IMG/VR virus record: IMGVR_UViG_3300027996_002186
Span: 1-64,000 of that record
DNA length: 64,000 nucleotides
Strand: one strand, 5' to 3'
Positions 1,363 through 52,544 of this stretch are shown piece by piece. Positions within the stretch are counted from its first letter, which is position 1. Every line of letters begins with the position of its first letter. Below the pieces are notes generated by a model. It was not told the origin of the DNA. It ran no database searches and was given only the letters and a program-made list of their open reading frames with translations. The position numbers and the translations under genes are program-made.

Positions 1363-2607
1363 TTACATTTCTCCTTTAAGTGTTTCTAATTGGTTACTGA
1401 CCTCAGTAAGTCTTAGATTTGAATCTTCGAATATACCATCAAAGTGTTCTTCTGATACTAAGGTTTGGTTCTTATCAACTCCAGTAGTGATAGTTTCGAT
1501 GTTATATTCTATTTCAGATAAGTTAGTCCATATCTTGTTTAGTGACTCTCCTAAATTTTCACCAATACTCGATATTTTATTTTCAACATCACTGAGGTCT
1601 AATATAGATACTTCATTTGATTGTTTAAGTTTCGACATACTTATACCCGATGTTATCATATACCTACCAAGTGATTTAGCGCTCGTGTTAGGTAAACTAG
1701 AATTCAATACATAAATATAAACTTTATAAGCTTGTTTAAGAGCTATTATATAATAATCACATAATTGATCTTCTTCCAACGTTCTATGATCAATTCCATT
1801 TTGACTAACTAATTTAATATTTCCTTTATCAGCACCATAATCAACAAATTTGATTTGATATGTATCTAGTCCATTTTCACCAATGACATCAGCTTTCTTA
1901 TTATCATCAGGTACCGTACCATTAAGAAGACCTCCTATAAAAGACTCAAATAAGAACCCAGCACTTGTAGCATTAAAATGATCTTTCATCTCTTGTAAGT
2001 ATTTCAATAGCATGATAGCTGATATCTTTTGTTGTATTACTTGTGTAGCATTTGAATTATTATATCCGCGGATGCCTAATGGGTTATTTAGTTTATTTAA
2101 CTTTTCTCTTAACCCAGTCAGCCCTGTTCTATTACTAAGTGGTTTAGAGAACCTTTTAATCTTTTTGATAACCTCCATATCAATCTTAACATTGACCCAA
2201 CCACTCGCCTCAGTATCGATTATATTAGAATATTCTGGTATAGATGGTGTCGGATCAGTTTCATCCTCCCAGTCTTTGTTTCTTACCCATGGATTACCCA
2301 ATTCATCAGTAACCACTTCTCCATCAAAGTTTCTCAATTGGTGATTTCCATTAAAATCAAATCCAACTAAAAATCCATTCTTGTCGATACCACCAATATA
2401 TTCATGTTCTCTATTTCTTCTTAATTTATCAGTGTTATAATTCCAGTCCTTATCAATAATTATCTCAATTAAGTTACCACCTCTTCTGATATTTACTATA
2501 TGTCCTTTCTTCTTAACTAATCTACCATCATTACCAATTATCTTATCAAGAACTTTTATACTTGTTCCTAATTCCTTTTTTTCGTTAAATCTTTTTAGGT
2601 GTTTCAT
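1363..2607 (-). CDS. N-terminal-motif protein with putative PD-(D/E)XK nuclease-like domain
   Basis: Starts MKHLKRFNE; GFLFESF...KADV...TYQIK resembles the E...D...(E/Q)xK restriction-endonuclease motif order. Confidence 0.55.
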   Translation of the reverse strand: MKHLKRFNEKKELGTSIKVLDKIIGNDGRLVKKKGHIVNIRRGGNLIEIIIDKDWNYNTDKLRRNREHEYIGGIDKNGFLVGFDFNGNHQLRNFDGEVVTDELGNPWVRNKDWEDETDPTPSIPEYSNIIDTEASGWVNVKIDMEVIKKIKRFSKPLSNRTGLTGLREKLNKLNNPLGIRGYNNSNATQVIQQKISAIMLLKYLQEMKDHFNATSAGFLFESFIGGLLNGTVPDDNKKADVIGENGLDTYQIKFVDYGADKGNIKLVSQNGIDHRTLEEDQLCDYYIIALKQAYKVYIYVLNSSLPNTSAKSLGRYMITSGISMSKLKQSNEVSILDLSDVENKISSIGENLGESLNKIWTNLSEIEYNIETITTGVDKNQTLVSEEHFDGIFEDSNLRLTEVSNQLETLKGEM

Positions 2608-2612
2608 TGACA

Positions 2613-2622
2613 TATATATTAA
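2613..2622 (-). promoter_or_regulatory. TTAATATATA putative late promoter (example)
   Basis: 5 nt upstream of ATG at 2607; motif recurs dozens of times. Confidence 0.6.
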
Positions 2623-2674
2623 AAATAAATACTAGATTTGATATACACAATTTGGCGAAATCATCAGAAATACA

Positions 2675-2706
2675 AAAAGGCCCTGAGTAAAACTCAGAAC
2701 CTTTTT
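2675..2706 (-). terminator. intrinsic terminator after csp gene
   Basis: - strand aaaggttctgagt-ttt-actcagggcctttt hairpin (with G-U pairs) and U tail. Confidence 0.75.
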
Positions 2707-3007: not shown

Positions 3008-3072
3008 ATAATTTATCATTTTTTTACGATACACAATTATAAAATTATAAATAAGTTTTTAATATATACTTT

Positions 3073-3483
3073 ATGAATCATATAAAATCATATAAAATAT
3101 TTGAATCCGAGTTGGGTTATGTTAGTAAACCAATCGATATAAAGTTCGATATAAAGACTGCTAAATTTGATTATAATAGAAATACAAAATATAGACATGG
3201 TATTGATAGGGTTATTAATGATGATGAAATAATTGAAATTGTCGAAAAGGGTATGGAAAAATTAACCATTGATTTGATGAATGATAATTTGGATATTGGT
3301 GATAGATTCGTGTTGAAAGGTGAGGGTTTTGATGGTGATATGTTAAATTTAGTTTGTCAGTTAAATCCTGGTGAGAATTTTTTCACATTGATGATCATAA
3401 CTGCTATGCGTAAAGAGGATTTCACAGGACATAGAAATCAATATATCTTGAATGTAGATACACAACAACATCATTACGAATAA
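3073..3483 (+). CDS. N-terminal-motif hypothetical protein
   Basis: MNHIKSYKIFES; TTAATATATA at 3059-3068. Confidence 0.8.
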   Translation: MNHIKSYKIFESELGYVSKPIDIKFDIKTAKFDYNRNTKYRHGIDRVINDDEIIEIVEKGMEKLTIDLMNDNLDIGDRFVLKGEGFDGDMLNLVCQLNPGENFFTLMIITAMRKEDFTGHRNQYILNVDTQQHHYE

Positions 3484-4313
3484 TGAGATATTTAAATAAA
3501 TATAATATCTATAAAGGTGATTTCTTGTTAGAAAGTTTGAATGAGTCTATTGATGTAGGTTCTTTTACATCTAAAATAAAAAATTATCTAAGTAATTTGA
3601 ATAAGAATCAAATAAAAGAATACTATAAAAAATTCATTGAAAAGGTATCAAAACTACCAAAAACAACAAAAAAGGCTATTTTAATAGGAGTTATACCAAT
3701 ATTTGCGTTAAATCTTAGTTCTGCTGACTTAGAACAATCAAGTGATCCAGTTGTTATAGAGGTTGTTAGTGAAGTAGAAACTTTAGAAGTGCAAGAACCA
3801 GTAGAAGAAATTGTAGAAGATAATTTCAAAAAAGGTTATGATTTTGTTTTAACACAAAACGGGTGGGATTCTATACGAGATGAAGAGAAATTAAGATTAT
3901 ATCCGTATGATATAGGTGATGGTAAAATAACAGTTGGATGGGGACATGCCGAAGATATCACTACATCTAAATATAAGATAGGTAATAAGATAAGTAAAGA
4001 GGAAGCTCAGAAATTATTAAAAGATGATTTGACATTAGCTGCTGATGCTGTTAGGCAAGTTTTCGTGGAGTGGAAAGAGAAGGATATAGATGTTGAAATA
4101 ACACAAGATATGTTTGATGCTTTAGTTTCAATAACATTTAACATTGGTGTTGGTGGTATGAGAAATTCGGACTTTATACAAGACTTAAAGAAAGGAGATT
4201 ATAAAGCTTGTGCTAATAGTATGAGAATACATAAGAGTAATCTATTTGAGAAGTTCCCTGGGTTAGAAACAAGACGAGGTAGAGAAGCTGATATTTACTT
4301 GAAAAATTATTAA
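3483..4313 (+). CDS. GH24 (phage lysozyme) with N-terminal motif extension
   Basis: EEKLRLYPYDIGDGKITVGWGH (E-x8-D-x5-T triad), FDALVSITFNIG, GLETRR..E; N-term MRYLNKY...LLESLNES. Confidence 0.9.
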   Translation: MRYLNKYNIYKGDFLLESLNESIDVGSFTSKIKNYLSNLNKNQIKEYYKKFIEKVSKLPKTTKKAILIGVIPIFALNLSSADLEQSSDPVVIEVVSEVETLEVQEPVEEIVEDNFKKGYDFVLTQNGWDSIRDEEKLRLYPYDIGDGKITVGWGHAEDITTSKYKIGNKISKEEAQKLLKDDLTLAADAVRQVFVEWKEKDIDVEITQDMFDALVSITFNIGVGGMRNSDFIQDLKKGDYKACANSMRIHKSNLFEKFPGLETRRGREADIYLKNY

Positions 4314-4333
4314 ATAAAAAAATAAATAATATC

Positions 4334-4633: not shown

Positions 4634-4930
4634 ATGAAATACTTAAAGACATTTGAAAATTATGGAATAGTAGAATCTGTTTCTTTCAATAGAAAGGATA
4701 AGGCTAGAATACTAACATTAAATGATAGAGCTACTGATGAGGATCACTTAATTAGACTAGCTGTTAATATGGCGAACGCTATTGGTAGAAATGTTGAAAA
4801 AGGAAGTGAGAACGAATATATCTCTGGTAAGAAAGCCTTTCAAAGAGGATTAGCAGCAGAAGATGAGAACTTCCACGAGGTAGCTCAGATATTTTTTGAT
4901 AGAGCAAAAGAATTGGGATTCGAAGAATAA
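4634..4930 (+). CDS. N-terminal-motif hypothetical protein
   Basis: MKYLKTFENYGIVES; TAATATATA at 4619-4627. Confidence 0.8.
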   Translation: MKYLKTFENYGIVESVSFNRKDKARILTLNDRATDEDHLIRLAVNMANAIGRNVEKGSENEYISGKKAFQRGLAAEDENFHEVAQIFFDRAKELGFEE

Positions 4931-9984: not shown

Positions 9985-10821
9985 TTATGATAGTTGGTAT
10001 TCGGAAAACTTCAATATCTTACTTTCATTGAAGTAATTATCCACTGGGTTTATTTCTTTGCTATATGATACCTCAGTTTCGATTTCTTCATCAGGAAATA
10101 GTTTAGGAAACTTTATATTCTTTATCTTATCTATAACTCTCTTAACCGCTAATATACCAATATCATTAAATGATTTCAACCCTTTGATTATATCAACCAT
10201 GAAATGTTTTATAGCAAAAACACCAACACCAATACCAGTTACTATTAATTTACCGACACCATCAGTAGATATCGCAGTTAAAATTGATGATATTGAAGTA
10301 TCACTTTGTTGACCAATATCATTAAATATCAACGCAAATGGTACAAATAAGGCTGTATAAGCAAACATTTCACCAAAAGATGTTACTATTTTACCCAATT
10401 TAGATGATATAAAGTTAAAAACGTTCTTAATACCTTTCATTGATGTTATAAGTGGTTTTATTAAATGAAATATATTTTCATTCTTTAATTTGGTAATTAA
10501 GTCTTTATATTTCTCTTTAGGTTCACTTAATAAAATACCCATTAAACAAACAGTTAAATAAACAATACTTGATTTGGAAATCTCTTGTGGTAATTCCATT
10601 TCTGTTACAAGCTTCTCTATTATAGGATATAATCCCTTAACAGCTGGAGCGAAAACAAACACAAATGAATATTCATAACCTAATTGATTCATAAGTTTTT
10701 TAACACTACCATCCGGTTCTTCCTTATTATGATGATGAACAGCTGCTTGTCCCGGTGTCTTATTTTCCAATAAAAAATTACATTCTCTTTCTGTGATATA
10801 ATCACTATACTTATTAATCAT
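9985..10821 (-). CDS. N-terminal-motif membrane protein
   Basis: MINKYSDYITE...LLEN; several hydrophobic helices; on - strand (ORF track says +). Confidence 0.75.
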   Translation of the reverse strand: MINKYSDYITERECNFLLENKTPGQAAVHHHNKEEPDGSVKKLMNQLGYEYSFVFVFAPAVKGLYPIIEKLVTEMELPQEISKSSIVYLTVCLMGILLSEPKEKYKDLITKLKNENIFHLIKPLITSMKGIKNVFNFISSKLGKIVTSFGEMFAYTALFVPFALIFNDIGQQSDTSISSILTAISTDGVGKLIVTGIGVGVFAIKHFMVDIIKGLKSFNDIGILAVKRVIDKIKNIKFPKLFPDEEIETEVSYSKEINPVDNYFNESKILKFSEYQLS

Positions 10822-11434: not shown

Positions 11435-11944
11435 ATGTTATTAAAGTATAAACTTTTTTTAGAAAAAAAATTCGATTCTAGAAAAGATATTGAGGGTTAT
11501 GTAGATGCCAATGAATTGGTTGGACAAAGACTTTGGTTTCATACCAATAGGACTAATCGTAATAACGGTAATAATGGGATGATTGGTGTTTATAGTACAT
11601 CACCTTCTGGTAGAAAAAAGGGTTTAGCTGGTAGGTATACGAATGAAGTTAGACTAACAGATCCTATTTTCTTTCAGACCTCAATAGCAGGATCTGATAC
11701 TATAAAGGCTACAAAAAAGAGAGGTTTAATAGCAGGAGTTTCGGGTGTAGTTGTTGAAACAAATAATGATATAAATAATATGATTCCGATAACTTACAAC
11801 CCCAACGAAAATGGGTATTTTCATGAGGTGGGAGATGTGGATGCAAAAGAAATAATATCGGGTAGTGAGGTATATTTCAACTCAACAGAAGATGGACAAT
11901 GGTTTATCTATGTGAAAAATCCCGTGTATCAATTACTCAAATAG
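11435..11944 (+). CDS. N-terminal-motif phage protein
   Basis: MLLKYKLFLE; TTAATATATA upstream. Confidence 0.8.
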   Translation: MLLKYKLFLEKKFDSRKDIEGYVDANELVGQRLWFHTNRTNRNNGNNGMIGVYSTSPSGRKKGLAGRYTNEVRLTDPIFFQTSIAGSDTIKATKKRGLIAGVSGVVVETNNDINNMIPITYNPNENGYFHEVGDVDAKEIISGSEVYFNSTEDGQWFIYVKNPVYQLLK

Positions 11945-12149
11945 AAAATAAACCGAGTTCCGATTCAAATATTACTCCAAAAATATATAAGCCAAAAAAT
12001 TGGTCGTTGAGTAGCACTGGATTTATAACAATACCAAATTATTGGATTGAAGGAAGACAACCAGATTTACGTTTAGATATCTACGACATATACTTTCTTA
12101 AAGTGGTAATATTAATTTATGATATGTTTATTTTTAATATATAACTATA

Positions 12150-12704
12150 ATGAAACACCTTATAAGATATAATGAGTCTGATGAGTCTGATGATAATAAA
12201 TTAGATATTAAGTATATAGAATCTTGCTTTGCTGAATTAATAGATAATTATATTGATTATAATAATGGTTATTTAGGAAGAAATAGTTGGACGAAAAATC
12301 CTATTACTAGTAGTTTAGAATATGGTGCTGAGGATTATTACAGTAATGAAAGTTGGTCTATTAGGTTATTACTTGAAGGAACACCAACAAATATGTCTGA
12401 TGATCTATCCGATGGTAGTATAAAAACATCAGGGGTTCATAGATCATCATATAGAATTGGATATAAGTTAGGTAAGTTAGTCAAGGACGCAAATGAAAAA
12501 CTTGAGATATTAAAGGAAATTGAAGTGGGTGTTAAACGAATTAAGGAAAAATACCCATCATATAATATAGATTTCAATAAACAATTTACACATAGTAAGG
12601 ATACACAAACCACGATACAAGAATTTATAGTTGTTGGTATTAGTCAACCACATTCAGATCGTTTACGACAGGTTAAATATAACTGGAAAGACGCGAATAT
12701 TTAA
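12150..12704 (+). CDS. N-terminal-motif protein, paralog family
   Basis: MKHLIRYNES; YIESCFAELIDN. Confidence 0.8.
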   Translation: MKHLIRYNESDESDDNKLDIKYIESCFAELIDNYIDYNNGYLGRNSWTKNPITSSLEYGAEDYYSNESWSIRLLLEGTPTNMSDDLSDGSIKTSGVHRSSYRIGYKLGKLVKDANEKLEILKEIEVGVKRIKEKYPSYNIDFNKQFTHSKDTQTTIQEFIVVGISQPHSDRLRQVKYNWKDANI

Positions 12705-13178: not shown

Positions 13179-13610
13179 ATGAAACATCTCAAAAGAATAA
13201 ATGAGTTATATCTAACATCAGATGTGTCTAGTGTTATAGATGATATATTATTGGAGATTAATGATATACCTAAGTTTGTTGGTCTTAATTGGAATCATAC
13301 GGATCGTTTGGGTCGGGCATCTGAACATAGTTTTTTGGTTATTATTAAGTTGAGTGAGGGTATAGAAGATGGTATGGATTATGGTGTTGGTTTAGATGAG
13401 GAAATAACAGAAACTATTAAAAGGTTATTAGAATTTATGACAAGCAATCGATATGAATACTTGATGGAATTTGGAACAGATAACATACCACCTGGTACTT
13501 CAAAAAAAGAATTAAGTGATTATATTAGGAAGTTTGAATATAGTGAATTATCTGATAATGATTTAACTATGTGGGTGGATGAATTTATAAGAATAACTTT
13601 TACAAAATGA
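13179..13610 (+). CDS. N-terminal-motif protein, paralog family
   Basis: MKHLKRINE; VIDDILLEIND...TIKRLLEFM. Confidence 0.8.
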   Translation: MKHLKRINELYLTSDVSSVIDDILLEINDIPKFVGLNWNHTDRLGRASEHSFLVIIKLSEGIEDGMDYGVGLDEEITETIKRLLEFMTSNRYEYLMEFGTDNIPPGTSKKELSDYIRKFEYSELSDNDLTMWVDEFIRITFTK

Positions 13611-14026
13611 GATACATGAAAACATATGAATCATTTGGGAATCCCTTTGGTAACAGTCCGAGGGATAGACGAATCAAGTTGTACAGTTTCCCCAGGGCAA
13701 CACTTTTACTTGAAATCGAGGATATTCTAAGAGAGTTAGAGGATAATAATATACGTGTTGAGGTATATTTTTGGGATGGTGTTGAGGTTTTCTTAACCAG
13801 TAGAAACGAACATGAAGTTAGAAGAGGCTTACTAGCTCCTGATACATTCCCATATGAGGTTATAAAACCTAATATAGAGCATCTAGTTTCTTTCTTAGAA
13901 GAAATTGGATATAAAATTAAAAGTATTCATAATATTGTTAATCTTGAATCAAGAGGATCAATAACTCAATATCCTGATTTGGATGGTGAAGAAATAGGTA
14001 GATTGGAATTTAGATTTATCAAATAA
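13607..14026 (+). CDS. N-terminal-motif protein, paralog family
   Basis: MRYMKTYES; EIEDILRELEDNN...IEHLVSFLEEIGY. Confidence 0.8.
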   Translation: MRYMKTYESFGNPFGNSPRDRRIKLYSFPRATLLLEIEDILRELEDNNIRVEVYFWDGVEVFLTSRNEHEVRRGLLAPDTFPYEVIKPNIEHLVSFLEEIGYKIKSIHNIVNLESRGSITQYPDLDGEEIGRLEFRFIK

Positions 14027-14909: not shown

Positions 14910-15050
14910 ATGGAAGGAATGAGGAAAATTATTATGTTTAGTCTTGTAATGATAGTGTTAAGTTCTTGTGGAGTACTCAAGGGTGGTAAAGGTAAATGTG
15001 AGTGTGAGGACTGGGGTCGAAGAGAGTCTGAAAAGACTGATAGTGTATGA
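14910..15050 (+). CDS. small lipoprotein
   Basis: MRKIIMFSLVMIVLSS-C lipobox; TTAATATATA at 14896-14905. Confidence 0.6.
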   Translation: MEGMRKIIMFSLVMIVLSSCGVLKGGKGKCECEDWGRRESEKTDSV

Positions 15051-15436
15051 AATACCTAAAAAAATTCAATGATATAAGATTCGAAATAGAAGAATCTGAT
15101 TCAACTAAAATACGTATGTATGATGTTGATGAAAAAGTTGGTTATTCATCAGTAACTATAAAGGATAATATTTTTGATAAATGGAATTTACATGATGATT
15201 TAGAAGTTGATCCGATAAAAAATACTAAAAGCTTATACATTCTAGGAATATCAATGAGGAATAGGAGAACAGGTTATGGTTCTAATTTAATAAACTATAT
15301 TGAGGAATATGCTAATAAGAAAGGATGTGAATACATCACACTAAGTTCTATTACCGATGCTTTGGGGTTCTGGAAAAAAATGGGATATGAAGTTTATAGT
15401 ATGGGTGATTACTATTCAATGTATAAGAAGTTATAA
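15047..15436 (+). CDS. GNAT N-acetyltransferase with N-terminal motif
   Basis: RRTGYGSNLI acetyl-CoA motif A and ALGFWKKMGY motif B; starts MKYLKKFND. Confidence 0.85.
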   Translation: MKYLKKFNDIRFEIEESDSTKIRMYDVDEKVGYSSVTIKDNIFDKWNLHDDLEVDPIKNTKSLYILGISMRNRRTGYGSNLINYIEEYANKKGCEYITLSSITDALGFWKKMGYEVYSMGDYYSMYKKL

Positions 15437-20020: not shown

Positions 20021-20040
20021 TTTATATATTAATATATAAA
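20021..20040. promoter_or_regulatory. palindromic bidirectional late-promoter motif
   Basis: Perfect 20-bp palindrome TTTATATATTAATATATAAA between divergent ATGs at 20017 and 20043. Confidence 0.7.
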
Positions 20041-20042
20041 GT

Positions 20043-31506: not shown

Positions 31507-31707
31507 ATGAAAAATATAAAAACATTTGAAAACTACGAGTACGAAAATTTCACATATAGTGATATGGAATTCGCTAAAGAATTATACGAAGAAGGTATGA
31601 CTGACCCAAAAGACATTGCTAGAGAAATGGATTGGAAAGATGATATGGATGAAGCAACAGTTAAACAGATGATATACACAATGAAAAAAAGTGGAGAGAT
31701 AACATGA
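31507..31707 (+). CDS. N-terminal-motif protein, HTH-like
   Basis: MKNIKTFENYEYE; AKELYEEG..PKDIAREM. Confidence 0.75.
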   Translation: MKNIKTFENYEYENFTYSDMEFAKELYEEGMTDPKDIAREMDWKDDMDEATVKQMIYTMKKSGEIT

Positions 31708-36627: not shown

Positions 36628-37386
36628 TTATTTTAAGTGGGGTAATACTTCTTTTGCGTAGTAATCATCAAACCCTTCAAGTAATCCAGTAATTGGAGTA
36701 CTCTTATCAGTTATAATGATTTCATCAATGAAACCAAAGTCTAAAGCTTCTTGTGAGTTTAACCACTTATCTCTTCTAGCACTTTCTAATACTTCATCAA
36801 AAGATTTACCACTATTCTCAGCTAACATCTTAAATAAGATATAATTATACTTCTCAGATTCCATTTGTGAGATGCGATTATCAGCAACATGTCCTTGTGC
36901 ACCACTCGATACTTGGTGAATCATAACCTTTGAGAAATTCAAAGATGAACGTTTGCCTTTTGTACCAGATGATAATAGAATAGAACCCATAGATGCTGCC
37001 ATACCTGTGTTGATAGTTTCAATATCACAATCGATATATCTCATTACATCAACCATAGATAATCCACTTTTAACTGAACCACCTGGTGAATCAATGTGCA
37101 TCCTAATATCTCTTTTCTCCGCTGCTCCTTCTTCTACGGAATCAAGATACATCAATTGTGCTTGTACAACAGTTGACATATTATCATTCACAACACCAGC
37201 AACCCATAAAATTCTTTCTCTCATTAATCTAGAGAAAATATCCATTTGAGTTACTCTCATTTCTCTTTCTTCAAGTATGTATGGTGTCATACTATTCTCC
37301 ATTTGTTTTTGGTAATAGTGTAAGTTCATAGAAGATAACCCCTCACTCTTTGCGTACTTATTAAAATCTTTCCCGTAATCTATCAT
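36628..37386 (-). CDS. clpP: ATP-dependent Clp protease proteolytic subunit
   Basis: MDIFSRLMRERI, IDSPGGSV, GMAASMG (catalytic Ser), VMIHQ, RDKWL. Confidence 0.97.
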   Translation of the reverse strand: MIDYGKDFNKYAKSEGLSSMNLHYYQKQMENSMTPYILEEREMRVTQMDIFSRLMRERILWVAGVVNDNMSTVVQAQLMYLDSVEEGAAEKRDIRMHIDSPGGSVKSGLSMVDVMRYIDCDIETINTGMAASMGSILLSSGTKGKRSSLNFSKVMIHQVSSGAQGHVADNRISQMESEKYNYILFKMLAENSGKSFDEVLESARRDKWLNSQEALDFGFIDEIIITDKSTPITGLLEGFDDYYAKEVLPHLK

Positions 37387-38631: not shown

Positions 38632-40113
38632 TTATTGACAATCATAACAAGGTCGTTCACCTCTCCCACTACAATCAGAACATTCTATGGTTGAATTACC
38701 ATCACATTCAGTACAATCTACTTTACCCCTAGCATCACAATCCTCACAATCTACATCATGTTCTTCACCATCAGATCCTTCTTCTGTTATAGTTCCTCCA
38801 CCATCACAATTTGAACAATTTTCTGTACCATATCCGTCACATTCTGGACAGTCTCTTTCACCACTACCACCACAATCATAACATTCCACTTCGCCTCCAC
38901 CACCACATCCCTCACATCTATAATGTGAGCCTTCAGTATCTTCTAATATATAACAATTACCACATTCATCTATTGATAGTGTACCATTATCTTTATTCCA
39001 ATATTTCAAAGTGTCTAAGTAAGGATATTTTTCATATTCACCTGGTTTTATATCCACGATTATGTTCAAATTTGTATCATCACCATTAGGATCAATACAA
39101 CTACCATTGGCGTTGGATGCGTTTCCACGTTTTGTATACCAACCATTCTCTTTAGCATAATCCTTAAATAATTGAACATCAGAATCATTGGCTGTGTATA
39201 TTCTATCCATAAATCTTTTACCATCTCTCAATTTCCAAAGTAATGCTCTTCCTAAAATTTTATCTGTATCATCATCTGATTTATAAATAACCAAAGTACA
39301 AACTTCTGGATTAGAAATATAGATATCAAAAAATTCCTCATCAACAGCGGACATACAAGAACTACCTAATACGCCCCTCCTTGTCGAGTAATGTGAATAG
39401 TGATACCAATATCCTATTTTATCACCAGTAACTTCTTCAAATAGTGAAAATTTATCATTAAATTTATCAATTGTTGCTTTATATAAATTAACAAATACTT
39501 CAATATCCTTATCAAGGAATTCTATATCATTAGTTTTAAGTAATGCTCTAATAGCTCTACCTACTTTAACTTCTTGTCTATTCGTTGACCAAATTTTATC
39601 CAATCTATCATCAACCTTTCTAATCTTTTCGGCATTTATGACCAATTCTGTACTTGGGAATTTAACATAAACAAATCTCTTACCCGATTCTTCCGAAACT
39701 GTTTCTTTAATAATTTCTCCTAGTTCATCATTTTCTGGTTTTATCAATTCCTCACCAGGTGTGAATCCTAAAGCATCGAAAATAGTTTTATTTTTATATT
39801 CTCCTCCTTCATTTTTATTAAAAGTTAACCAACCACCATTATTACCAACAAATCTAACCTTAATATTTTCCTCACTCAGTATTTGTTGTGCTCTTCTATC
39901 TGGTATAAATGATACTTTATCATTTTTATCCATTACTATATCAAAATAATTAGACCTAACGTCTAAATCTTTATTCTCAACATCTAAAAGTGATTTGGAT
40001 ACTGGGTTCTCTATTTTTGAAAGAGTGAGTCTAAATTTATCAGAATAAACGACATCCGACTCCAATATTAACTCTAATGACTCATTTATGAAATCAAAAT
40101 ACTTTTTTAACAT
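38632..40113 (-). CDS. N-terminal-motif protein with 8 DnaJ-type CxxCxGxG repeats
   Basis: MLKKYFDFINESLELILES; LGSSCM..GRALLW..FMDRIYT core; paralog of 27949..29415. Confidence 0.85.
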   Translation of the reverse strand: MLKKYFDFINESLELILESDVVYSDKFRLTLSKIENPVSKSLLDVENKDLDVRSNYFDIVMDKNDKVSFIPDRRAQQILSEENIKVRFVGNNGGWLTFNKNEGGEYKNKTIFDALGFTPGEELIKPENDELGEIIKETVSEESGKRFVYVKFPSTELVINAEKIRKVDDRLDKIWSTNRQEVKVGRAIRALLKTNDIEFLDKDIEVFVNLYKATIDKFNDKFSLFEEVTGDKIGYWYHYSHYSTRRGVLGSSCMSAVDEEFFDIYISNPEVCTLVIYKSDDDTDKILGRALLWKLRDGKRFMDRIYTANDSDVQLFKDYAKENGWYTKRGNASNANGSCIDPNGDDTNLNIIVDIKPGEYEKYPYLDTLKYWNKDNGTLSIDECGNCYILEDTEGSHYRCEGCGGGGEVECYDCGGSGERDCPECDGYGTENCSNCDGGGTITEEGSDGEEHDVDCEDCDARGKVDCTECDGNSTIECSDCSGRGERPCYDCQ

Positions 40114-40151: not shown

Positions 40152-40433
40152 ATGAAATATATTAAACCATATAAAATTTTTGAATCAAGATACACTCTTG
40201 AGGAATACTTATATGCTGTTTCACAAGAATTTAGTAAGTATAATATCTCTGCGGTCGGTGTTCGAGAGTTGTTAGATAATTATAAAGTAGCTATCGAAGA
40301 TGCTATATCAAGTGATGTTGATCCATATACATTTGTAAAAAATATTGCTAATGATATGCAATTATCTGATAATGGTGGTTTCATGAGTCATGACACACCG
40401 CCTCCGCAACCAACAACGATTAAATATCTATAA
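40152..40433 (+). CDS. N-terminal-motif protein
   Basis: MKYIKPYKIFES. Confidence 0.8.
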   Translation: MKYIKPYKIFESRYTLEEYLYAVSQEFSKYNISAVGVRELLDNYKVAIEDAISSDVDPYTFVKNIANDMQLSDNGGFMSHDTPPPQPTTIKYL

Positions 40434-40526: not shown

Positions 40527-40907
40527 ATGAGAATAAAGAGATTCAATGAAATAGAAAAATCAGGAGAAATATCTGAAGGTATAGATGCTGATATCTTAGG
40601 TATCACAACTAACACTGGTAGAAGAACCGGAACTAGAAGTCCTAATAGAAGAACTCAATACTTTTATGATTACTATACTGGTAAGAAAATTAGTGGTAAA
40701 TCTAAATATGAATTAAACTCTAAAGTTTTTGACTTGGCTAAGAGAGATGATGAACTTGGTTTATTAGCTCAATTTTGTTTACAAGTTGAAAGAGATTCAA
40801 TGACTACTGATTATAGTATTACAGGACAAATGGATAAAGGTGGTTTGTCTGATGAATTTATACAAAAGATTAAAAATATCAGTGATAATATTGAAGGTGA
40901 AGAGTAA
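40527..40907 (+). CDS. N-terminal-motif protein
   Basis: MRIKRFNE...EISEG; TTAATATATA upstream. Confidence 0.8.
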   Translation: MRIKRFNEIEKSGEISEGIDADILGITTNTGRRTGTRSPNRRTQYFYDYYTGKKISGKSKYELNSKVFDLAKRDDELGLLAQFCLQVERDSMTTDYSITGQMDKGGLSDEFIQKIKNISDNIEGEE

Positions 40908-41157: not shown

Positions 41158-41412
41158 ATGAGATATCTGAGAACATACAAAAAGTTTACGGAAAATGCTT
41201 ACGTAGCAGCATCCACTGCTGGTTCTGGTAGTGTAGTTGCTGCTCAACCTGGATCCTTACCTGGTACATTCGGAACAGATGGGTCTGGTGATATTGGGTT
41301 TACCTTTAAGAAGGAGAAAAGAAAAAAAGGTGATGTTACCGAGGTTAGTGATTTGAGAGACCTAGAAGAGGTTGAAATTGAGAAGGTTGATGATATAAAA
41401 ATCAAAAATTAA
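41158..41412 (+). CDS. N-terminal-motif protein
   Basis: MRYLRTYKKFTEN; TTAATATATA at 41142-41151. Confidence 0.8.
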   Translation: MRYLRTYKKFTENAYVAASTAGSGSVVAAQPGSLPGTFGTDGSGDIGFTFKKEKRKKGDVTEVSDLRDLEEVEIEKVDDIKIKN

Positions 41413-43965: not shown

Positions 43966-44499
43966 ATGAAACATATAAAAAGATTTGATGAGGTTATTAA
44001 AGTCGATATTAAAGTCGGTGATACTGTCCTTGGTGGTCGATTTAAGAATAAGAAAACCCTTGTTAAGAAAATAGGTAAAAATAAAAAAGGTGATATAACT
44101 ATTAATGATAAGCCTTTGCTTAAATATAGAATCATAAAAGAAGATGTTGATATTAAAGATGTTGTTACTTATTACTTATCACATTTAATAGATGATGGAT
44201 TCGTAGCTTATGATGGAGATGAATTTATAAGAATTTTCAAACCAAAGTATGGTGATGTTTATACTTATACGAATTTAATAGAATTTAATTTTGCTGAAAT
44301 AGCTGGTGATATAATCAGGTTTGTTAATTCAGTGGACGATATTAAAAATATATCATATATGACAATTGCTGAAAAACCAAAAGAGTATAAAATGCAAGGT
44401 GGTGGTGTGTTATTTGATAATTTGGAAAGAAATGTTATTGATATTAATAATTTAGAACAAGTCAATATGGATATGTATTCATTGACTATATTATTTTAA
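43966..44499 (+). CDS. N-terminal-motif protein, paralog-family domain
   Basis: MKHIKRFDE; internal IIKE-D; YLSHLIDDGF. Confidence 0.8.
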   Translation: MKHIKRFDEVIKVDIKVGDTVLGGRFKNKKTLVKKIGKNKKGDITINDKPLLKYRIIKEDVDIKDVVTYYLSHLIDDGFVAYDGDEFIRIFKPKYGDVYTYTNLIEFNFAEIAGDIIRFVNSVDDIKNISYMTIAEKPKEYKMQGGGVLFDNLERNVIDINNLEQVNMDMYSLTILF

Positions 44500-45597: not shown

Positions 45598-45999
45598 TTA
45601 AAAGTTTGTGTGTGCTACACCATCACCGAATGTAACATATTCCTTTTCTTTTTCTTTTGTAAAAGAAAGATATTTATCAATAGGATAATGTTCACGATCT
45701 TCGGTATCTTTTTCGAACCATTCTGATATTTTCATTAAGTCACGTATCCTCTCAATTATATCTTTTAGGTTTGAAGAATCTGGTGTTTCCTTATATTCTT
45801 TCCATTGAATTCTAACAAATATTTGATCACTTTTGGGTAACATCTTACTAACATTTATAGAAAATCCTTCGTCTTCCAATTCCATACAAATATCCTTTAT
45901 CGTTTGTACCAAACAATCTGTTTCTTCGTTATCATATCCCATTCTACAAGGTTTGGAAACGTTTGAGTTAAATTCATTTATAGATTTTAGATATCTCAT
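45598..45999 (-). CDS. N-terminal-motif protein, paralog family
   Basis: MRYLKSINEF; TIKDICMELEDEGF...IIERIRDLM. Confidence 0.8.
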   Translation of the reverse strand: MRYLKSINEFNSNVSKPCRMGYDNEETDCLVQTIKDICMELEDEGFSINVSKMLPKSDQIFVRIQWKEYKETPDSSNLKDIIERIRDLMKISEWFEKDTEDREHYPIDKYLSFTKEKEKEYVTFGDGVAHTNF

Positions 46000-46517
46000 T
46001 TTTCGTAAGGAGCAAATATGTGTTCCCAGGGGATAATATCTTCTGTGTGATACATAGCAATATCAAATCTAATACCATGTTCACCATCACCTTGAAATAC
46101 CGAGGACTCTAAAGAAAAATTAAGTATTTTGAATTTATACCCAAAATCTTTTATTTTAATTAACGAATCAGAAAACTCATTAAAGAATTCAATTGTACTA
46201 GACATTTGTTTATCATTTACATCTCTAATTGATGATGATAAATCATCAAATCTTAATCTAAGTGTATATCCTTTATAAAGAGGTTTATCTATGTAATTTA
46301 TTCTATCTCTAACTTCAAAGTTTTCATCAACTAAAGTATGTGTTGAGTTTTTAATTCCTATAATTTTACCACCTAAATCAACCAATTCTAAGAAAAATTC
46401 TTTTAACTCACCATCTCTATTATATTCAGATCTCATGATAGCTAATTCAAACCAACCATCTCCCTCGCCCGATTCGTTTATCATCTCTACATTATTATAA
46501 TTCTTTAAGTATTTCAT
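45996..46517 (-). CDS. N-terminal-motif protein, paralog family
   Basis: MKYLKNYNNVEMINES; LKEFFLELVDLG. Confidence 0.8.
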   Translation of the reverse strand: MKYLKNYNNVEMINESGEGDGWFELAIMRSEYNRDGELKEFFLELVDLGGKIIGIKNSTHTLVDENFEVRDRINYIDKPLYKGYTLRLRFDDLSSSIRDVNDKQMSSTIEFFNEFSDSLIKIKDFGYKFKILNFSLESSVFQGDGEHGIRFDIAMYHTEDIIPWEHIFAPYEK

Positions 46518-48647: not shown

Positions 48648-50648
48648 TTATTTATTATTGTTATTGAATTTCTCAAATTTAGCGATAATCTTTTTATTTG
48701 TATTATCGATAGTCATTAAGCTTTTCCTATCCGTTTTCATTCCTTTTCCAGCACCGGCCCTAATAAATTCTTCTTTTGTTACTGTTGATGGTGTACCATC
48801 GTTATTAACTAATTGATATTCGAAATTTTCATTAGTATCTTGTCCTAATAACTTAACACCTTTGGTATCATAATCAACATCCTCTCCAGATCTAGCAGTA
48901 TCTATCTTTTCTTTAAGAGCATTTACAAAATCTCTAGCTATCTTCTTTAATACATCAACATATTTATCTGTATCATAAGCTATTTTCATCATAGCTTTAT
49001 TATATTTTAATAGATTAAGACCAGCGATATTTGTAATTGATGGGTGACCTCCACTATTTCTTATTACAATTTCCCATACTGGAATTTTGAGATTATTTAA
49101 TAGTGTTTTTTGTTCGTAAGATAAATCTTTATGTAAAACATTCATAGCTTCTTCTAATCCATCTTCTTTAATATCAACATTAAGAATAGTTCTACCCTCT
49201 TTCTTAAATACACAATCAGAATAAAAAGCTTCTAAATCAGAATATTTAAATCCAACACCTTCGTATGAATCACCTTCATCCTTCTTCATTTTTTTCCAAT
49301 CTTGTGAATTTTCAAATTCATTCTTAATTGATTCTAATGATATATAATACTTACTCATCATTGGTTCATACTTAGCTAATACTTCTTTAGAGATTTCTCC
49401 TAAGTTAATATCTTTAAGTATTTTCTCCTTAAATGGATTACAAGAAACTTGTACAAGACCCATTGGCCAAACAATACAGATAAATTCCGCATCCGGGAAA
49501 TTCTTAAATGGTGTATATCTATCATAAGAACCTGGTTTAATCATACTACCACCTCCATATTGCATAAGTATTTTATAATCTTCATCAATATGAATACCCT
49601 TTATAGAACTCTTACCATTGAGAGCTTTTCTTCCTAACCAAGTAACGCTATAAACATTTTTCGGTTTATCTTCAATATAATTTTTATCAAATAATCTATC
49701 AACATACTTAACATACTCTTCGTTAGATATTCCTAGCTTCTTAGCTAATTCAACATCTTGAGAGGCTGGCATTCTGTGTATATTTTTTAGGATGCTTAAT
49801 TCGGTTCTACCAATTTCCATAACATCACCACTTTCACTTTCAACGAATCCGTAATCCTTCATTCTCTCGATATAGTTAGTAAGGTTTGTTTTTATTTCTT
49901 CTGGTGTTGCTAATCTACCAAGCTTATCGCTTGTTTTTGCATTATTAATATAATGTCTAATATTGTTAAACATTGAGTATAAACTCGCAGTTGAGTCTAA
50001 TAATAAACACTCAAGTATATTCTTATTTATGTGATCTCTTTTACCATCTAATGATTTAACAGTTATTCTTTTATTCTTATAAGCTAATAATAATCTATTA
50101 ACCACTAATCCCATCATAAATCTATTCTTTTGTGGTGTTTCTGCCTTTTCATATTTGAATATAGAATTTTGAACATCTTCTGGCTTAATATTATTTCTCA
50201 AGAAATCTGCTGAATCAATTGTTTGAATCATTTTTATATCTTGTGCCGTGAATATATCTGAATATGAAACTTCACCTGATATAATCTCAACATTTGATCT
50301 AGCTGATTTGAAATATGTTGATTCTGTGTCCTCAGCACCAACTTGTTTATCATGATGATCCGATTGTATATGGAACATTGGTTTACCGTGTGCGAAATCA
50401 ACTAAAACTTTTAATGTATCAGGTCTTCCGTTTTTAACAGCATACTCTAATCCACCATATTGAATGATATGACAATCAACTGTTTCTATTTGATAGTAAT
50501 TTTTTAAGAATACACTCATAGCTAATGCTGATGTTACTCCATCTAAATCTTTGTGAAAGTATATCTCACATTCTTTATATCCTTTAGTTATAGCTTTTAT
50601 GTTTCTTAAACCTACTTCCTCGTTTACAAACTCAGTATATTTTTTCAT
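48648..50648 (-). CDS. DHH-family phosphoesterase-like protein with winged-helix insertion and N-terminal motif
   Basis: HKDLDG, VDF, SDHH, DSAD, GGH motifs; ELAKKLGIS...L...NYI...Y.VT.LG wHTH; starts MKKYTEFVNEE. Confidence 0.75.
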   Translation of the reverse strand: MKKYTEFVNEEVGLRNIKAITKGYKECEIYFHKDLDGVTSALAMSVFLKNYYQIETVDCHIIQYGGLEYAVKNGRPDTLKVLVDFAHGKPMFHIQSDHHDKQVGAEDTESTYFKSARSNVEIISGEVSYSDIFTAQDIKMIQTIDSADFLRNNIKPEDVQNSIFKYEKAETPQKNRFMMGLVVNRLLLAYKNKRITVKSLDGKRDHINKNILECLLLDSTASLYSMFNNIRHYINNAKTSDKLGRLATPEEIKTNLTNYIERMKDYGFVESESGDVMEIGRTELSILKNIHRMPASQDVELAKKLGISNEEYVKYVDRLFDKNYIEDKPKNVYSVTWLGRKALNGKSSIKGIHIDEDYKILMQYGGGSMIKPGSYDRYTPFKNFPDAEFICIVWPMGLVQVSCNPFKEKILKDINLGEISKEVLAKYEPMMSKYYISLESIKNEFENSQDWKKMKKDEGDSYEGVGFKYSDLEAFYSDCVFKKEGRTILNVDIKEDGLEEAMNVLHKDLSYEQKTLLNNLKIPVWEIVIRNSGGHPSITNIAGLNLLKYNKAMMKIAYDTDKYVDVLKKIARDFVNALKEKIDTARSGEDVDYDTKGVKLLGQDTNENFEYQLVNNDGTPSTVTKEEFIRAGAGKGMKTDRKSLMTIDNTNKKIIAKFEKFNNNNK

Positions 50649-50698
50649 ATTATTTTTCATATCAGTATAATAATTTTCTTTATTCTTTATATATTAAA

Positions 50699-51142
50699 TT
50701 AGACAACGTATTTTATTTTTATGTCTTCTATTCGATGCATAAATATTTTAAGTTGATATCCCACTACCTTTGACTTCGAAATATACCATCCAAAATCACC
50801 CAATCTATCATTTGTGGTTTCTATTATTTCTTTAAATTCACTAGATTTTATATAATCTTCTAATTCTTCTTTTTGTCTTCCGACATCATTAGCATTCCGT
50901 TGAACCAATTCCTGAAAGACACATCTTATATAAGGTATAGATTCTATAACCATTTTACCATCCTCTTTATCAACTGATGTATCTCTTTGGATAAGATTTT
51001 TATCAAAGTATGTTGATGTATTATATCCAGCATCCGATATATCAACAAACATATCCTCAATGTATTCCTTTGTTAATCCATTATAATGTTCTTCCTTTGG
51101 TACTAACATTTCCCAACCTTCGAATGTCTTTAAATATTTCAT
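50699..51142 (-). CDS. N-terminal-motif protein, paralog family
   Basis: MKYLKTFEG; YIEDMFVDISDAGY. Confidence 0.8.
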   Translation of the reverse strand: MKYLKTFEGWEMLVPKEEHYNGLTKEYIEDMFVDISDAGYNTSTYFDKNLIQRDTSVDKEDGKMVIESIPYIRCVFQELVQRNANDVGRQKEELEDYIKSSEFKEIIETTNDRLGDFGWYISKSKVVGYQLKIFMHRIEDIKIKYVV

Positions 51143-51149
51143 TATTTCA

Positions 51150-52544
51150 TTATTTCTTTAAGAATTGCTTACCATATGATTTCATAATACCCTTATCAGT
51201 TCCTTTCTCTCCATCAGCATCAAACTTAGTATCAAAGAAGTTATTATAATCAGTAACAATCTTAACATCTGAATCCATTGTTGCATAAGGACCTAGTTTA
51301 CCTGATCGATAAACACCACCTCTCATATCACCATTTAAATAACCTCCTACAAAATAACAATTGGTTAATTTACTACGCTCAACATTACAATTTAATATCT
51401 TTGTATCTTCTGCATCAGAGTTATTTAATTTTGATTTAGATACTTGTGAATTTATTATGTTAGTTCCCATAAAGAAACAATCATCAAATATACCCTCGAC
51501 ATTACAGTTTATTAATTCATATCCTTTTATGGTAGATGTTCCTTTTATATTAGCATCAACAACCTCCATGGTTTGATCAGTTGTTACATAATTGATAATA
51601 CACTCTTTCATATCTTCCGAACCTTCTATTATATTATAAAGTTTTGTATAAATTTTACCATAATATGCAGAAACGATATCATATGAGTGATTCTGGTCTA
51701 TTTGTATTTGTATAGTTGGAAAATCGATTATAAAATTATCATAACTTGATAAGTTCTTATAATTCAATATATTTTCTTCTAAATAATCTTCTAATTTATT
51801 AATATCTTCTGAATTGAAATCAGATCTAACTGAATCATAAACATTAATAATAAATCTTTCCAAGAAGTAAATTAATTGTCCAATATTTTTCTCGTAATCT
51901 TCACCCCCGATATATCTAAATTCTAACCTTTGTGTTTCTCTGGTATTACTTATGTTAGTGAAGTTTATACCATAATATTTATCATTTGGTAATCTCATGT
52001 TGTTTTTAACAACACCAATTGGTATGTTAAAAAAATCATATTCCTTAAATGGAATCATTTTCTTAATACTCTTAGCATAAACATTTGATTTCCTTGATGG
52101 ATAAGCTCTGTATATCTCTTCTTCATCAGTATTTAATATTAATTTTAATACATTTAGATCATTTAGATCCATATCATCATCAGTAAAAGATATATTAAAG
52201 TGTACTGATGACTTCTCATTTGTATATCCATAATTTTGTATGAACTTTAGAATCTTAATTAAGAAGTATTTAGCATTATAAAAATCCATTGGTCCAGTCA
52301 CTATTTCAACCATATTGGAACCACCAGATAAATCAGGTTCTATTTTGAAATTATTTGCATCTGGTTTGAAGTCTGAGTGATATTGTCTAAATCCCCAAAC
52401 TTTCACTGGATTAAGTTCCTGATTCAATAATTCAAGTGTTTTATAATAAGATAAATCCTTTAAATAAAATTCAAACTCGAAACCAACTTGTGATTTTTTG
52501 AGCTTGTTTGTTTGGCTTAGAAATTTATCAGAGTATTTTCTCAT
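51150..52544 (-). CDS. putative amidoligase (COOH-NH2 ligase family) with C-terminal beta-helix
   Basis: VGFEFEF, EPDLS, EIVTGP, SSVHFNIS, KYYGIN, LEFR; pentapeptide-like tail. Confidence 0.75.
   Translation of the reverse strand: MRKYSDKFLSQTNKLKKSQVGFEFEFYLKDLSYYKTLELLNQELNPVKVWGFRQYHSDFKPDANNFKIEPDLSGGSNMVEIVTGPMDFYNAKYFLIKILKFIQNYGYTNEKSSVHFNISFTDDDMDLNDLNVLKLILNTDEEEIYRAYPSRKSNVYAKSIKKMIPFKEYDFFNIPIGVVKNNMRLPNDKYYGINFTNISNTRETQRLEFRYIGGEDYEKNIGQLIYFLERFIINVYDSVRSDFNSEDINKLEDYLEENILNYKNLSSYDNFIIDFPTIQIQIDQNHSYDIVSAYYGKIYTKLYNIIEGSEDMKECIINYVTTDQTMEVVDANIKGTSTIKGYELINCNVEGIFDDCFFMGTNIINSQVSKSKLNNSDAEDTKILNCNVERSKLTNCYFVGGYLNGDMRGGVYRSGKLGPYATMDSDVKIVTDYNNFFDTKFDADGEKGTDKGIMKSYGKQFLKK

Follow-up and report, generated by a model that had tools for sequence, protein, structure and literature searches.

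Among the genes of a huge Bacteroidota phage, why should about 30 otherwise unrelated and putatively late proteins begin with the same kind of 9-12-residue peptide? The question arose within a stretch of 64,000 nucleotides (positions 1 to 64,000 of IMG/VR record IMGVR_UViG_3300027996_002186; the whole of this stretch is hereafter the window), where the peptide matches the tag used by phage T4 to load proteins into its head, suggesting, but not proving, that these giant viruses pack and inject a very large set of ready-made enzymes. A preliminary description, made from the sequence alone, had proposed that 30-34 proteins carry such an address label, that it is fused to different domains and absent from tail, housekeeping and TAnnTTTG-driven genes, and that the labelled proteins are loaded into the head and delivered with the DNA.

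The observation itself was confirmed. All 14 N-termini listed in that description were found at their coordinates, with the true starts at 2607 and 50648 being the second in-frame ATG, as had been implied. A strong motif with the core [LIM]-K-x-[YF]-x-[EN]-[FY]-x-x-E is carried by 26 gene starts; a 10-column core matrix built from 28 window tags, and therefore circular for the window itself, places 25-26 real gene starts at a score of 10 or more, with about 6 weaker versions at 9985-10821, 3483-4313, 32202-32597, 32594-33475, 36205-36594 and 51150-52544, giving a total of about 26-32, in line with the earlier estimate. An ambiguous case at 13054 scores -12.7 and is not a tag. The composition-matched null for the window expects 0.15 hits, and in the 634-kb relative LR745206, which was not used for training, 71 of 891 ORF N-termini score 10 or more against 1.6 expected (maximum 5 in 200 simulations), with only 21 of 176,170 internal 10-mers reaching that score.

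The tagged proteins are indeed unrelated: with the first 15 residues removed, only one homologous pair was found among 34, that of 27949-29415 (+) and 38632-40113 (-), and Pfam searches identified different domains in different tagged proteins. The absence of the tag from tail and baseplate genes was upheld, whereas its absence from TAnnTTTG-driven genes points in the right direction (1 of 31 against 7 of 77) but is not significant in the window (p = 0.43). The scale is larger than first thought, with about 70-130 tagged genes per genome and the tag widespread in IMG/VR.

A broad array of genes carries the tag along the window. The first, 1363-2607 (-), encodes 414 aa beginning MKHLKRFNE (score 14.6; no Pfam hit), with TAATATATA lying 5 nt upstream of the ATG; it is followed by 3073-3483 (+) (136 aa, MNHIKSYKIFES, 17.2), with a late-type promoter 4 nt upstream, and by the weakly tagged 3483-4313 (+) (276 aa, MRYLNKYNIYKG, 4.7), featuring a Phage_lysozyme domain at residues 134-268 (2.8e-25), with hits to endolysin PHROGs and a weak hit to the internal virion lysozyme motif. 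Gene 4634-4930 (+) (98 aa, MKYLKTFENY, 14.7) has an ortholog in LR745206 that keeps the tag; 9985-10821 (-) has a weaker tag (278 aa, MINKYSDYITE, 8.8); 11435-11944 (+) (169 aa, MLLKYKLFLE, 11.5) carries a Phage_L5_gp82 domain; and in 12150-12704 (+) (184 aa, MKHLIRYNES, 13.2) the tag is followed by an acidic linker. Gene 13179-13610 (+) (143 aa, MKHLKRINE, 10.4) is followed by 13607-14026 (+) (139 aa, MRYMKTYESF, 18.4), the second gene of an operon with no promoter of its own, and by 15047-15436 (+) (129 aa, MKYLKKFND, 14.5), a GNAT acetyltransferase (1.4e-7). Further tagged genes are 18855-19289 (-) (144 aa, MEYIKTYELF, 15.8), 20043-20489 (+) (148 aa, MKYLRTYKIFES, 17.3), 21480-21836 (+) (118 aa, MKLKRFNED, 16.5), 24665-24934 (-) (89 aa, MLHLKLFEEF, 17.1) and 24986-25372 (+) (128 aa, MKYLKKFFED, 16.8).

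In the central part of the window, 27949-29415 (+) (488 aa, MKSYTEFLLE, 17.1) shows a T4-like form that starts directly at the core, and is the paralog of 38632-40113 (-) (493 aa, MLKKYFDFINES, 18.4). Between them lie 31507-31707 (+) (66 aa, MKNIKTFENY, 16.0); 31704-32177 (+) (157 aa, MKYLKKFDK, 12.8); 32202-32597 (+) (131 aa), with a shifted tag, MKTLNK-LKLYEEFVEE; and the NUDIX hydrolase gene 33462-34007 (-) (181 aa, MKFVKTFESF, 15.6). Downstream in the window are 40152-40433 (+) (93 aa, MKYIKPYKIFES, 15.3), 40527-40907 (+) (126 aa, MRIKRFNE, 17.2), 41158-41412 (+) (84 aa, MRYLRTYKKFTE, 15.2), 43966-44499 (+) (177 aa, MKHIKRFDE, 14.6), 45598-45999 (-) (133 aa, MRYLKSINEF, 15.2) and 45996-46517 (-) (173 aa, MKYLKNYNN, 13.1). 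The last group comprises 48648-50648 (-) (666 aa, MKKYTEFVNEE, 18.7), a T4-like form with a winged-helix domain and a weak DHH hit; 50699-51142 (-) (147 aa, MKYLKTFEG, 17.2); and 51150-52544 (-) (464 aa, MRKYSDKFLSQ, 2.4), a doubtful tag with a late-type promoter 5 nt upstream. An untagged 618-aa gene in the baseplate block, 59864-61720 (-), is preceded by TTAATATATA and was used as a marker that this promoter type drives structural (late) genes.

Resemblance to the T4 capsid-targeting sequence (CTS) is statistically strong. In a blind scan of 1326 T4 ATG sites with at least 50 open codons, the matrix built only from the window ranked ipI, ipIII and ipII at positions 2, 3 and 4, with a chance probability of about 1e-8; the preliminary description, which had attributed the CTS to IPII and IPIII, is thereby corrected in that IPI also carries a CTS-like N-terminus. 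Residues 4 and 7 of the T4 IPIII CTS have been shown experimentally to carry targeting, and residues 8 and 10 processing (PMC9026906); the two best-conserved tag positions are the aromatics at core 4 and 7, with position 4 being Y or F in 99% and position 7 F in 56% of 96 LR745206 tags. The first Glu is followed by Ser in 44% and Asn in 10% of these tags, a hydrophobic residue sits at P3 in most, and [LIVFYM]-x-E-[SNAG] occurs in 52 of 96 tags against 64 of 713 other N-termini, although the Glu position varies between core positions 5 and 11 and about 30% of tags lack an E-[SNAG] site. The capsid-protein propeptide has VLE-N and INE-N sites.

T4-type head genes are encoded by the same phage. 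Over the segments compared, the window is 100% identical to IMG/VR contig 3300027996_002186 and 99.99-100% identical to 3300025770_000870, the second of which encodes a 713-aa protease ORF immediately upstream of a gp23-type capsid gene. The LR745206 ortholog of this protease, 82% identical, and T4 gp21 both hit phrog_207 (7e-32 and 8e-76), although Pfam Peptidase_S77 is below its cut-off (E = 0.005) and a phmmer search against PDB did not reach the gp21 structure. LR745206 additionally has Portal_T4 (2.7e-57) and Gp23 (1.8e-26) hits, and T4-like gp17, gp18, gp19, gp4, gp25, gp5 and replication genes. No gp22 homologue was found by phmmer, and the C-terminal half of the protease has no PHROG hit; this half is acidic and holds about 10 tandem 14-residue repeats containing Y-S-E-Y-[IL]-A-E-N, the same heptad class as the T4-like tags and the T4 CTS, conserved in three other megaphages. 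It could serve as scaffold, although this is unproven. The similarity was recognised post hoc and is only suggestive; the general tag matrix does not score the repeats, and only the T4-like tag subclass resembles them.

Late expression is inferred from a promoter motif rather than from expression data. In LR745206, a TATATATA-type motif precedes the portal, protease, capsid, sheath, terminase, gp4 and gp25 genes; it lies upstream of 19 of 31 tagged against 10 of 77 untagged window ORFs (odds ratio 10.6, p = 1e-6), and of 50 of 127 against 90 of 764 in LR745206. Selection acts on the peptide, with synonymous codon usage inside the tag equal to genome usage, and orthologs keeping the tag at 78% identity against 58% for the next 20 residues. 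The tag is also modular: all phage NUDIX orthologs carry tag variants directly before the conserved domain, whereas the 53%-identical homologue in a bacterial contig with T9SS and TonB genes starts at the domain without a tag, and the AlphaFold2 model of the 33462-34007 product predicts a disordered tag (pLDDT below 50 for residues 1-13) and a confident NUDIX fold from residue 17. Tagged proteins rarely have membrane segments (2% against 8.6%), the tags are amphipathic-helix-like, and one copy of each tagged protein totals 2-3 MDa, against 413 MDa of DNA.

The peptide is most likely, with a probability of about 0.6, a T4-type capsid-targeting propeptide expanded to roughly 8-14% of the proteome. 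In this view, tagged genes would be transcribed late, from the same TATATATA-type promoter as the head and tail genes, and the tag, a disordered, amphipathic stretch of 9-14 residues (M-K-[YH] followed by [LI]-K-x-[YF]-x-[EN]-[FY]..E-[SN]), would bind through its two conserved aromatic residues to the scaffolding core of the assembling prohead, a core probably provided, at least in part, by the repeat-rich C-terminal half of the gp21-family prohead protease protein. The protease would then cut after the Glu that ends the tag, typically at [ILF]-x-E|S/N, releasing the cargo inside the shell while the small peptides leave; the mature proteins would stay in the DNA-filled head, enter the next host with the DNA, and act there before any phage gene is expressed. 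Candidate cargo in the window includes a NUDIX hydrolase, a GNAT acetyltransferase and a lysozyme, and in the relative an RNA ligase, a CCA-adding-type nucleotidyltransferase, 2H/Acb1-like phosphoesterases, exonucleases and a MazE-like protein.

The interpretation offered in the preliminary description is thus supported in part. Every in silico test that could have refuted the capsid-targeting reading was passed, and the analysis establishes a real, modular tag that acts at the peptide level, is confined to N-termini and closely and significantly resembles the T4 CTS, in a phage with T4-type head genes whose tagged genes share the late-type promoter; binding to the core, cleavage after Glu, retention in the virion and ejection with the DNA are, by contrast, inferred without direct evidence. 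Several findings weigh against this reading: the sampled cultured relatives PTm1 and MaF61, as well as Lak-B5, lack the tag, and no cultured relative with virion proteomics carries it; tagging of 8-14% of all genes is far beyond any known phage; tagged proteins are acidic (median pI 5.1), while T4-related internal proteins are described as basic (PMC9026906); and some tagged enzymes (RNA ligase, nucleotidyltransferase, exonucleases) could equally well work in the cytoplasm late in infection. A bolder extension, tentative and somewhat less likely than not, is that mega-phages of Bacteroidota use an ancient address code shared across T4-related phages to load on the order of 100 different ready-made proteins into each capsid, with the tag imitating one unit of the tandem-repeat scaffold fused to the prohead protease; the virion would then be a large protein-delivery device as well as a DNA container, and the injected proteome of uncultivated phages could be read directly from metagenomes by scanning N-termini.

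Of the alternatives, the one that survives best, although unlikely, is a late-protein sorting or maturation signal with a different destination or purpose, such as a propeptide keeping enzymes inactive until removed by a phage protease, or a handle for a late chaperone or an intracellular assembly site, the proteins in either case not ending up in the head. The large number and enzymatic variety of tagged proteins, their acidity, and E-S sites resembling protease sites are compatible with this; however, the conserved aromatic positions match the T4 residues mapped for targeting and not those mapped for processing, the blind T4 scan picks exactly the three head-internal proteins, and the phage has T4-type head genes. 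An N-terminal degron, giving late accessory proteins a short, controlled lifetime, for example through the phage-encoded ClpP or the host ClpXP, is very unlikely: the window encodes a ClpP homologue at 36628-37386 (8e-53), and Met-basic-hydrophobic N-termini loosely recall the N-terminal ClpX recognition motifs described for E. coli, but this explains neither the specific match to the T4 CTS at positions 4, 6, 7 and 10, nor the E-S dipeptide, nor the heptad shared with the prohead protease repeats.

About as unlikely is a DNA-level scar, in which conserved promoter-plus-5' gene ends serve as recombination cassettes for capturing and shuffling genes, the encoded peptide having no function of its own. 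The tag often sits 4-6 nt downstream of a conserved TAATATATA promoter motif, host genes have been captured and given the tag, and conserved promoter and CTS regions have been proposed to mediate shuffling of internal-protein genes in T-even phages; against this, synonymous codons in the tag vary as in the rest of the genome, about 60% of tagged genes have no exact promoter motif nearby, substitutions are conservative at the amino-acid level (Y/H/F, L/I/V/M, K/R, F/Y), and the tag is kept in orthologs whose DNA has diverged. An artefact of AT-rich codon bias, named beforehand as a possible refutation, or an mRNA-level translation-initiation element for leaderless late transcripts is essentially refuted, since, although the genome is 29-30% GC, Lys AAA is common as the second codon and many tagged genes appear leaderless, the null expectation in LR745206 is far exceeded, internal Met codons give 7 of 3378, codon usage in the tag equals genome usage, tags also occur on operon-internal genes and on genes with long leaders, and the AT-rich controls PTm1 (1-50 kb, 31% GC), Lak-B5 (50 kb, 26% GC) and MaF61 (1-50 kb) have no hits at score 10 or more.

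The closest known system is the CTS of T4 IPI, IPII and IPIII, similarly about 10 residues at the extreme N-terminus of unrelated proteins, sharing the pattern hydrophobic/Met-K-x-[YF]-x-E-[FY]-[ILV]-x-E; T4 has 3 such proteins plus one unannotated candidate, gene 61.1, against the 70-130 per genome of this clade, where most tags carry three extra residues (M-K-[YH]) before the core, the Glu position is variable, and the mostly acidic cargo includes enzymes, with function inferred only. The variable internal-protein sets of T-even phages, diverse proteins sharing only the CTS, follow the same logic of a conserved address label on a fast-evolving set delivered to counter host defences (PMC3012670; PMC9026906), but contain a handful of small basic proteins, whereas the tagged set here is dispersed over the whole 0.5-0.7 Mb genome. 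In giant phages phiKZ, 201phi2-1 and SPN3US, many different head-internal proteins are trimmed after Glu by a homologous prohead protease and delivered into the cell (PMC5694885; PMC13282480); their propeptides are mostly 80-130 residues long with cut motifs of the ALE/AxE type (PMC5694885) and no short shared N-terminal tag, in contrast to a tag of 9-14 residues abutting the folded domain, and about 50 head proteins are known there against possibly more than 100 tagged proteins here. Dar (defence against restriction) proteins of phage P1 are incorporated into the capsid during assembly and injected with the DNA (PMC9024508; PMC12810830). Their incorporation depends on an ordered protein-protein assembly pathway and longer N-terminal regions, and is not known to involve a common short tag. 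Sec or lipoprotein signal peptides, with a hydrophobic h-region of 10 or more residues after a basic N-terminus, do not fit, as the tag is charged and amphipathic and tagged proteins rarely have hydrophobic segments; true signal-peptide genes in the window, such as 27155-27886, are untagged.

Megablast comparison of the window, which is 30% GC with about 108 ATG-initiated ORFs on both strands and no tRNA genes, returned only patchy 77% identity to two 'uncultured phage' genomes of 634,780 and 642,428 bp, belonging to the Mahaphage clade of huge phages, whose genomes above 634 kb are predicted to infect Bacteroidetes (PMC7162821). The window is syntenic with the relative LR745206 at about 36-117 kb, with 68 of 108 ORFs giving hits at 27-93% amino-acid identity, most above 40%; over the segments retrieved it is 100% identical to IMG/VR contig 3300027996_002186 (483,262 bp) and 99.99-100% identical to 3300025770_000870 (241,918 bp). 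Two features fit a Bacteroidota host: TAnnTTTG promoter-like sites lie in front of genes such as the RNase H operon, and the ORF at 65-700 (+) has a type IX secretion (T9SS) C-terminal sorting domain (Por_Secre_tail, 7.6e-8), suggesting a phage protein exported through the host T9SS.

The N-termini quoted in the preliminary description were all found where it had placed them, and the observation is confirmed. Alignment shows one core, [LIM]-K-x-[YF]-x-[EN]-[FY]-x-x-E, which most genes precede with three extra residues (M-K-[YH]), whereas a few (27949, 50648) start directly at the core. With a 10-column matrix built from 28 window tags, 25-26 true gene starts score 10 or more and about six carry weaker versions, against 0.15 expected from a composition-matched null, although this count is circular for the window. 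The independent test in the complete LR745206 genome therefore matters more: of its 891 ORFs, 71-73 score 10 or more, 96 score 8 or more and 127 score 6 or more, where the null expects 1.6 at 10 or more, with a maximum of 5 in 200 simulations, and only 21 of 176,170 internal 10-mers and 7 of 3378 internal Met positions reach 10. No tags, and no hit at 10 or more, were found in the portions scanned of three AT-rich control phages, examined also in the search for cultured relatives with virion proteomics, namely the first 50 kb of Tenacibaculum phage PTm1 (31% GC) and of Flavobacterium phage MaF61, and a 50-kb piece of Lak-B5 (26% GC).

Conservation is at the peptide level. Leu, Tyr, Lys, Glu and Phe codons vary among tags, and across 96 tags synonymous usage matches genome usage for K, E, F, N, I, R, H, T and S; only TTA (Leu) and TAC (Tyr) depart from it at p<0.01, with TAC usage matching that of other N-termini. 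Replacements are conservative at the amino-acid level, and in 12 ortholog pairs the tag is 78% identical, against 58% for the next 20 residues and 68% for the rest.

A paralog family was rejected as the source of the shared N-termini, since after removal of 15 residues only the products of 27949-29415 (+) and 38632-40113 (-) are homologous (34% identity, 488 and 493 residues); this pair features internal repeats and a weak Cys-rich (BSD2-like) hit, has no PHROG or Pfam family, and both members are conserved in LR745206. Domains differ between tagged proteins, comprising in the window phage lysozyme, L5 gp82, GNAT, NUDIX, and a winged helix with a weak DHH hit; and, in 42 larger tagged proteins of LR745206, PolyA_pol-type nucleotidyltransferase, T4-type RNA ligase, GH108, 2H phosphoesterase, Acb1-like, RNase T, a family-B exonuclease domain, Toprim, MazE-like and several DUFs. 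PHROGs gave no annotation for the large tagged proteins at 27949, 38632, 1363, 51150, 9985, 48648 or 12150, and Pfam found nothing for most small tagged proteins. Modularity is shown directly by the NUDIX case, where, of twenty aligned metagenomic homologues, all but the bacterial one and one truncated at its start have an N-terminal extension just before the conserved LRYxGPNPT block, the closer ones (55% identity or more) carrying recognisable tag variants. The 53%-identical homologue sits in a bacterial contig with T9SS and TonB-receptor genes and starts at the domain with no tag, and the AlphaFold2 model (mean pLDDT 85, pTM 0.83) leaves residues 1-13 below pLDDT 50, with the predicted NUDIX domain folding from residue 17.

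When all 1326 ATG sites of the T4 genome with at least 50 open codons were scanned with the window-derived matrix, ipI, ipIII and ipII ranked 2, 3 and 4, a placement of three named sites in the top four with a chance of about 1e-8, whereas gp67, gp68, Alt, gp21 and gp22 do not score. Rank 1, the best CTS-like N-terminus in the whole T4 genome by this matrix, is the 54-residue hypothetical protein 61.1 (18966-19130 (-) of the T4 record), which is not annotated as an internal head protein. The T4 N-termini, as read from the record, follow M-K-T-[YF]-x-E-F-[IT]-x-[ES]. The first 10 residues of IPIII suffice for head incorporation, with residues 4 and 7 carrying the targeting and residues 8 and 10 the processing, and foreign proteins fused to the CTS are packaged and delivered (PMC9026906; PMC3012670; PMC5694885). 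In the 96 LR745206 tags the best-conserved positions are exactly core 4 (Y or F, 99%) and core 7 (F, 56%), plus core 1 (L/I/M, 97%) and core 2 (K, 74%); the first Glu is followed by Ser in 44% and Asn in 10%, and [LIVFYM]-x-E-[SNAG] occurs in 54% of tags against 9% of other N-termini.

LR745206 has T4-like portal, capsid, terminase, sheath, tube, gp4, gp25, gp5 and gp3 genes, together with replication genes gp43, gp41, gp32, UvsX, gp46/47 and gp44, and Pfam gives Portal_T4 at 2.7e-57 and Gp23 at 1.8e-26. Directly upstream of the capsid gene lies a 707-residue ORF (198546-200669), the first ~200 residues of which match phrog_207 'head maturation protease' (7e-32), the same family that T4 gp21 hits at 8e-76, although Pfam Peptidase_S77 is only a weak match and a phmmer search of the protease domain against PDB found nothing meaningful. 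The window's own phage has this gene too (3001-5139 of L152, a locus retrieved from the same phage as the window), encoding 713 residues at 82% identity and followed by a capsid gene 79% identical to that of LR745206.

The C-terminal half of this protease protein is very acidic and contains about ten tandem 14-residue repeats of the form N-I-A-Y-S-E-Y-[IL]-A-E-N-L-D-K, followed by a poly-acidic stretch and a conserved C-terminal domain, a region that may be the missing scaffold of these phages. The fusion was also located at the further retrieved loci L147 (5913+), L149 (4237-) and L148 (3824-); the array is conserved in the 735-kb and 636-kb megaphages and is degenerate in the 462-kb one. The heptad class [YF]xE[FY][ILV]xE, which describes the T4 CTS and the T4-like tags, occurs 22 times in the LR745206 proteome, 10 times in this array and 7 times in N-terminal tags. 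This pattern was, however, chosen after the data had been seen, and columns 4-10 of the general window-derived matrix do not single out the repeats, such that the resemblance is treated as suggestive only: the tag may imitate one scaffold unit, or tag and scaffold may share a protease site ([IL]-x-E|N/S). The capsid propeptide also has VLE-N and INE-N sites.

A TATATATA-type motif (most often TTAATATATA) lies upstream of the portal, protease, capsid, terminase, sheath, gp4 and gp25 genes in LR745206 and precedes baseplate-region genes in the window, and so behaves as the late promoter. It precedes 19 of 31 tagged ORFs in the window against 10 of 77 others (odds ratio 10.6, p = 1e-6), and 50 of 127 against 90 of 764 in LR745206, with tagged genes lacking their own motif being mostly operon-internal. 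The claim in the preliminary description that tags avoid TAnnTTTG-driven genes points in the right direction but is not significant here (1 of 31 against 7 of 77). The motif TTAATATATA ends only 4-6 nt before the ATG of many genes (for example 3055-3072, 12132-12149, 20025-20042, 27931-27948 and 61721-61740 in the window); across the LR745206 genome its distance to the ATG is bimodal, at 4-9 nt (73 genes) and 17-38 nt (67 genes), and TAnnTTTG sites also cluster 3-6 nt from ATGs, suggesting that a large share of the phage's mRNAs are leaderless or nearly so. Untagged accessory genes include a ClpP protease (36628-37386 (-), 8e-53), an M50 site-2-type peptidase (25566-26180 (-)), a GH16 glycoside hydrolase (20495-21190 (+)) and RNase H (23101-23574 (-)), with an upstream TAnnTTTG site seen for the M50 peptidase gene and for 23553-23861, which overlaps the start of the RNase H gene.

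Tagged proteins are soluble, only 2% having a hydrophobic segment against 8.6% of others, and acidic, with a median pI of 5.1 against 5.8, while the tags themselves have a high helical hydrophobic moment. One copy of each tagged protein weighs 2-3 MDa against 413 MDa of DNA, and T4 carries about 1000 IP molecules per head (PMC5694885), so tens of copies of each putative cargo would fit.

The best explanation is a T4-type capsid-targeting propeptide expanded to about a tenth of the proteome (probability about 0.6), and the head-packaging interpretation of the preliminary description is partly supported. The analysis establishes that the tag is real, modular and acts at the peptide level, that it resembles the T4 CTS significantly, that the T4-type head genes are present, and that the tagged genes share the late-type promoter (TAATATATA); binding to the core, cleavage after Glu, retention in the head and ejection are inferences from sequence. 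Of the alternatives, in descending order of how well they survive, another sorting or maturation role is followed by a degron and then by a recombination scar. A codon-bias or RNA-level artefact is essentially excluded by the null, the AT-rich controls and the synonymous codon usage. The CTS itself is already described from T4, and what differs here includes the scale on which CTS-like tags occur, with no paper in the literature searched linking the CTS with huge phages or megaphages and none containing the tag sequences. Huge phages encode hundreds of proteins of unknown role and none of this clade is cultured; a validated tag would label 8-14% of their genes as virion cargo, giving a concrete, testable explanation for part of the extra coding capacity and capsid volume, and would point to a pre-packaged counter-defence and takeover toolkit of NUDIX, GNAT, RNA-repair enzymes, 2H/Acb1-like phosphoesterases, nucleases and a lysozyme. 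It would also show the T4 CTS to be a deeply conserved code rather than a T-even peculiarity, and would supply many natural tag variants for protein packaging in engineered T4-type capsids.

Tags also occur in the 735-kb and 462-kb Mahaphages, and one exact degenerate DNA pattern for M-K-Y-L-K-T-F-E hit at least 120 IMG/VR loci, on contigs ranging from 5 to 676 kb at 19-39% GC, the retrieved flanks of which hold 184 tags in 1.04 Mb, including T4-like forms. The tag also gives a simple sequence rule for mining candidate injected proteins from metagenomes. Twelve tagged gene starts lie within 14 kb of a 22% GC viral contig (IMG/VR locus L105, 14,087 bases), and some relatives therefore carry dense arrays of small tagged genes.

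The 3' end of the window holds baseplate genes, including a gp5-like OB-fold protein and a tail lysozyme. Next to this block, two overlapping ORFs in different frames, 53184-53495 and 53489-55003 (+), both match one 605-residue ORF of LR745206 (109975-111792), and the gene is therefore split by a frameshift in this phage, whether a real frameshift, a programmed one or an assembly error. Beside the baseplate genes, a 705-residue protein (55566-57683 (+)) has a C-terminal Peptidase_C39-like domain (5.4e-14), an unusual partner for tail genes.
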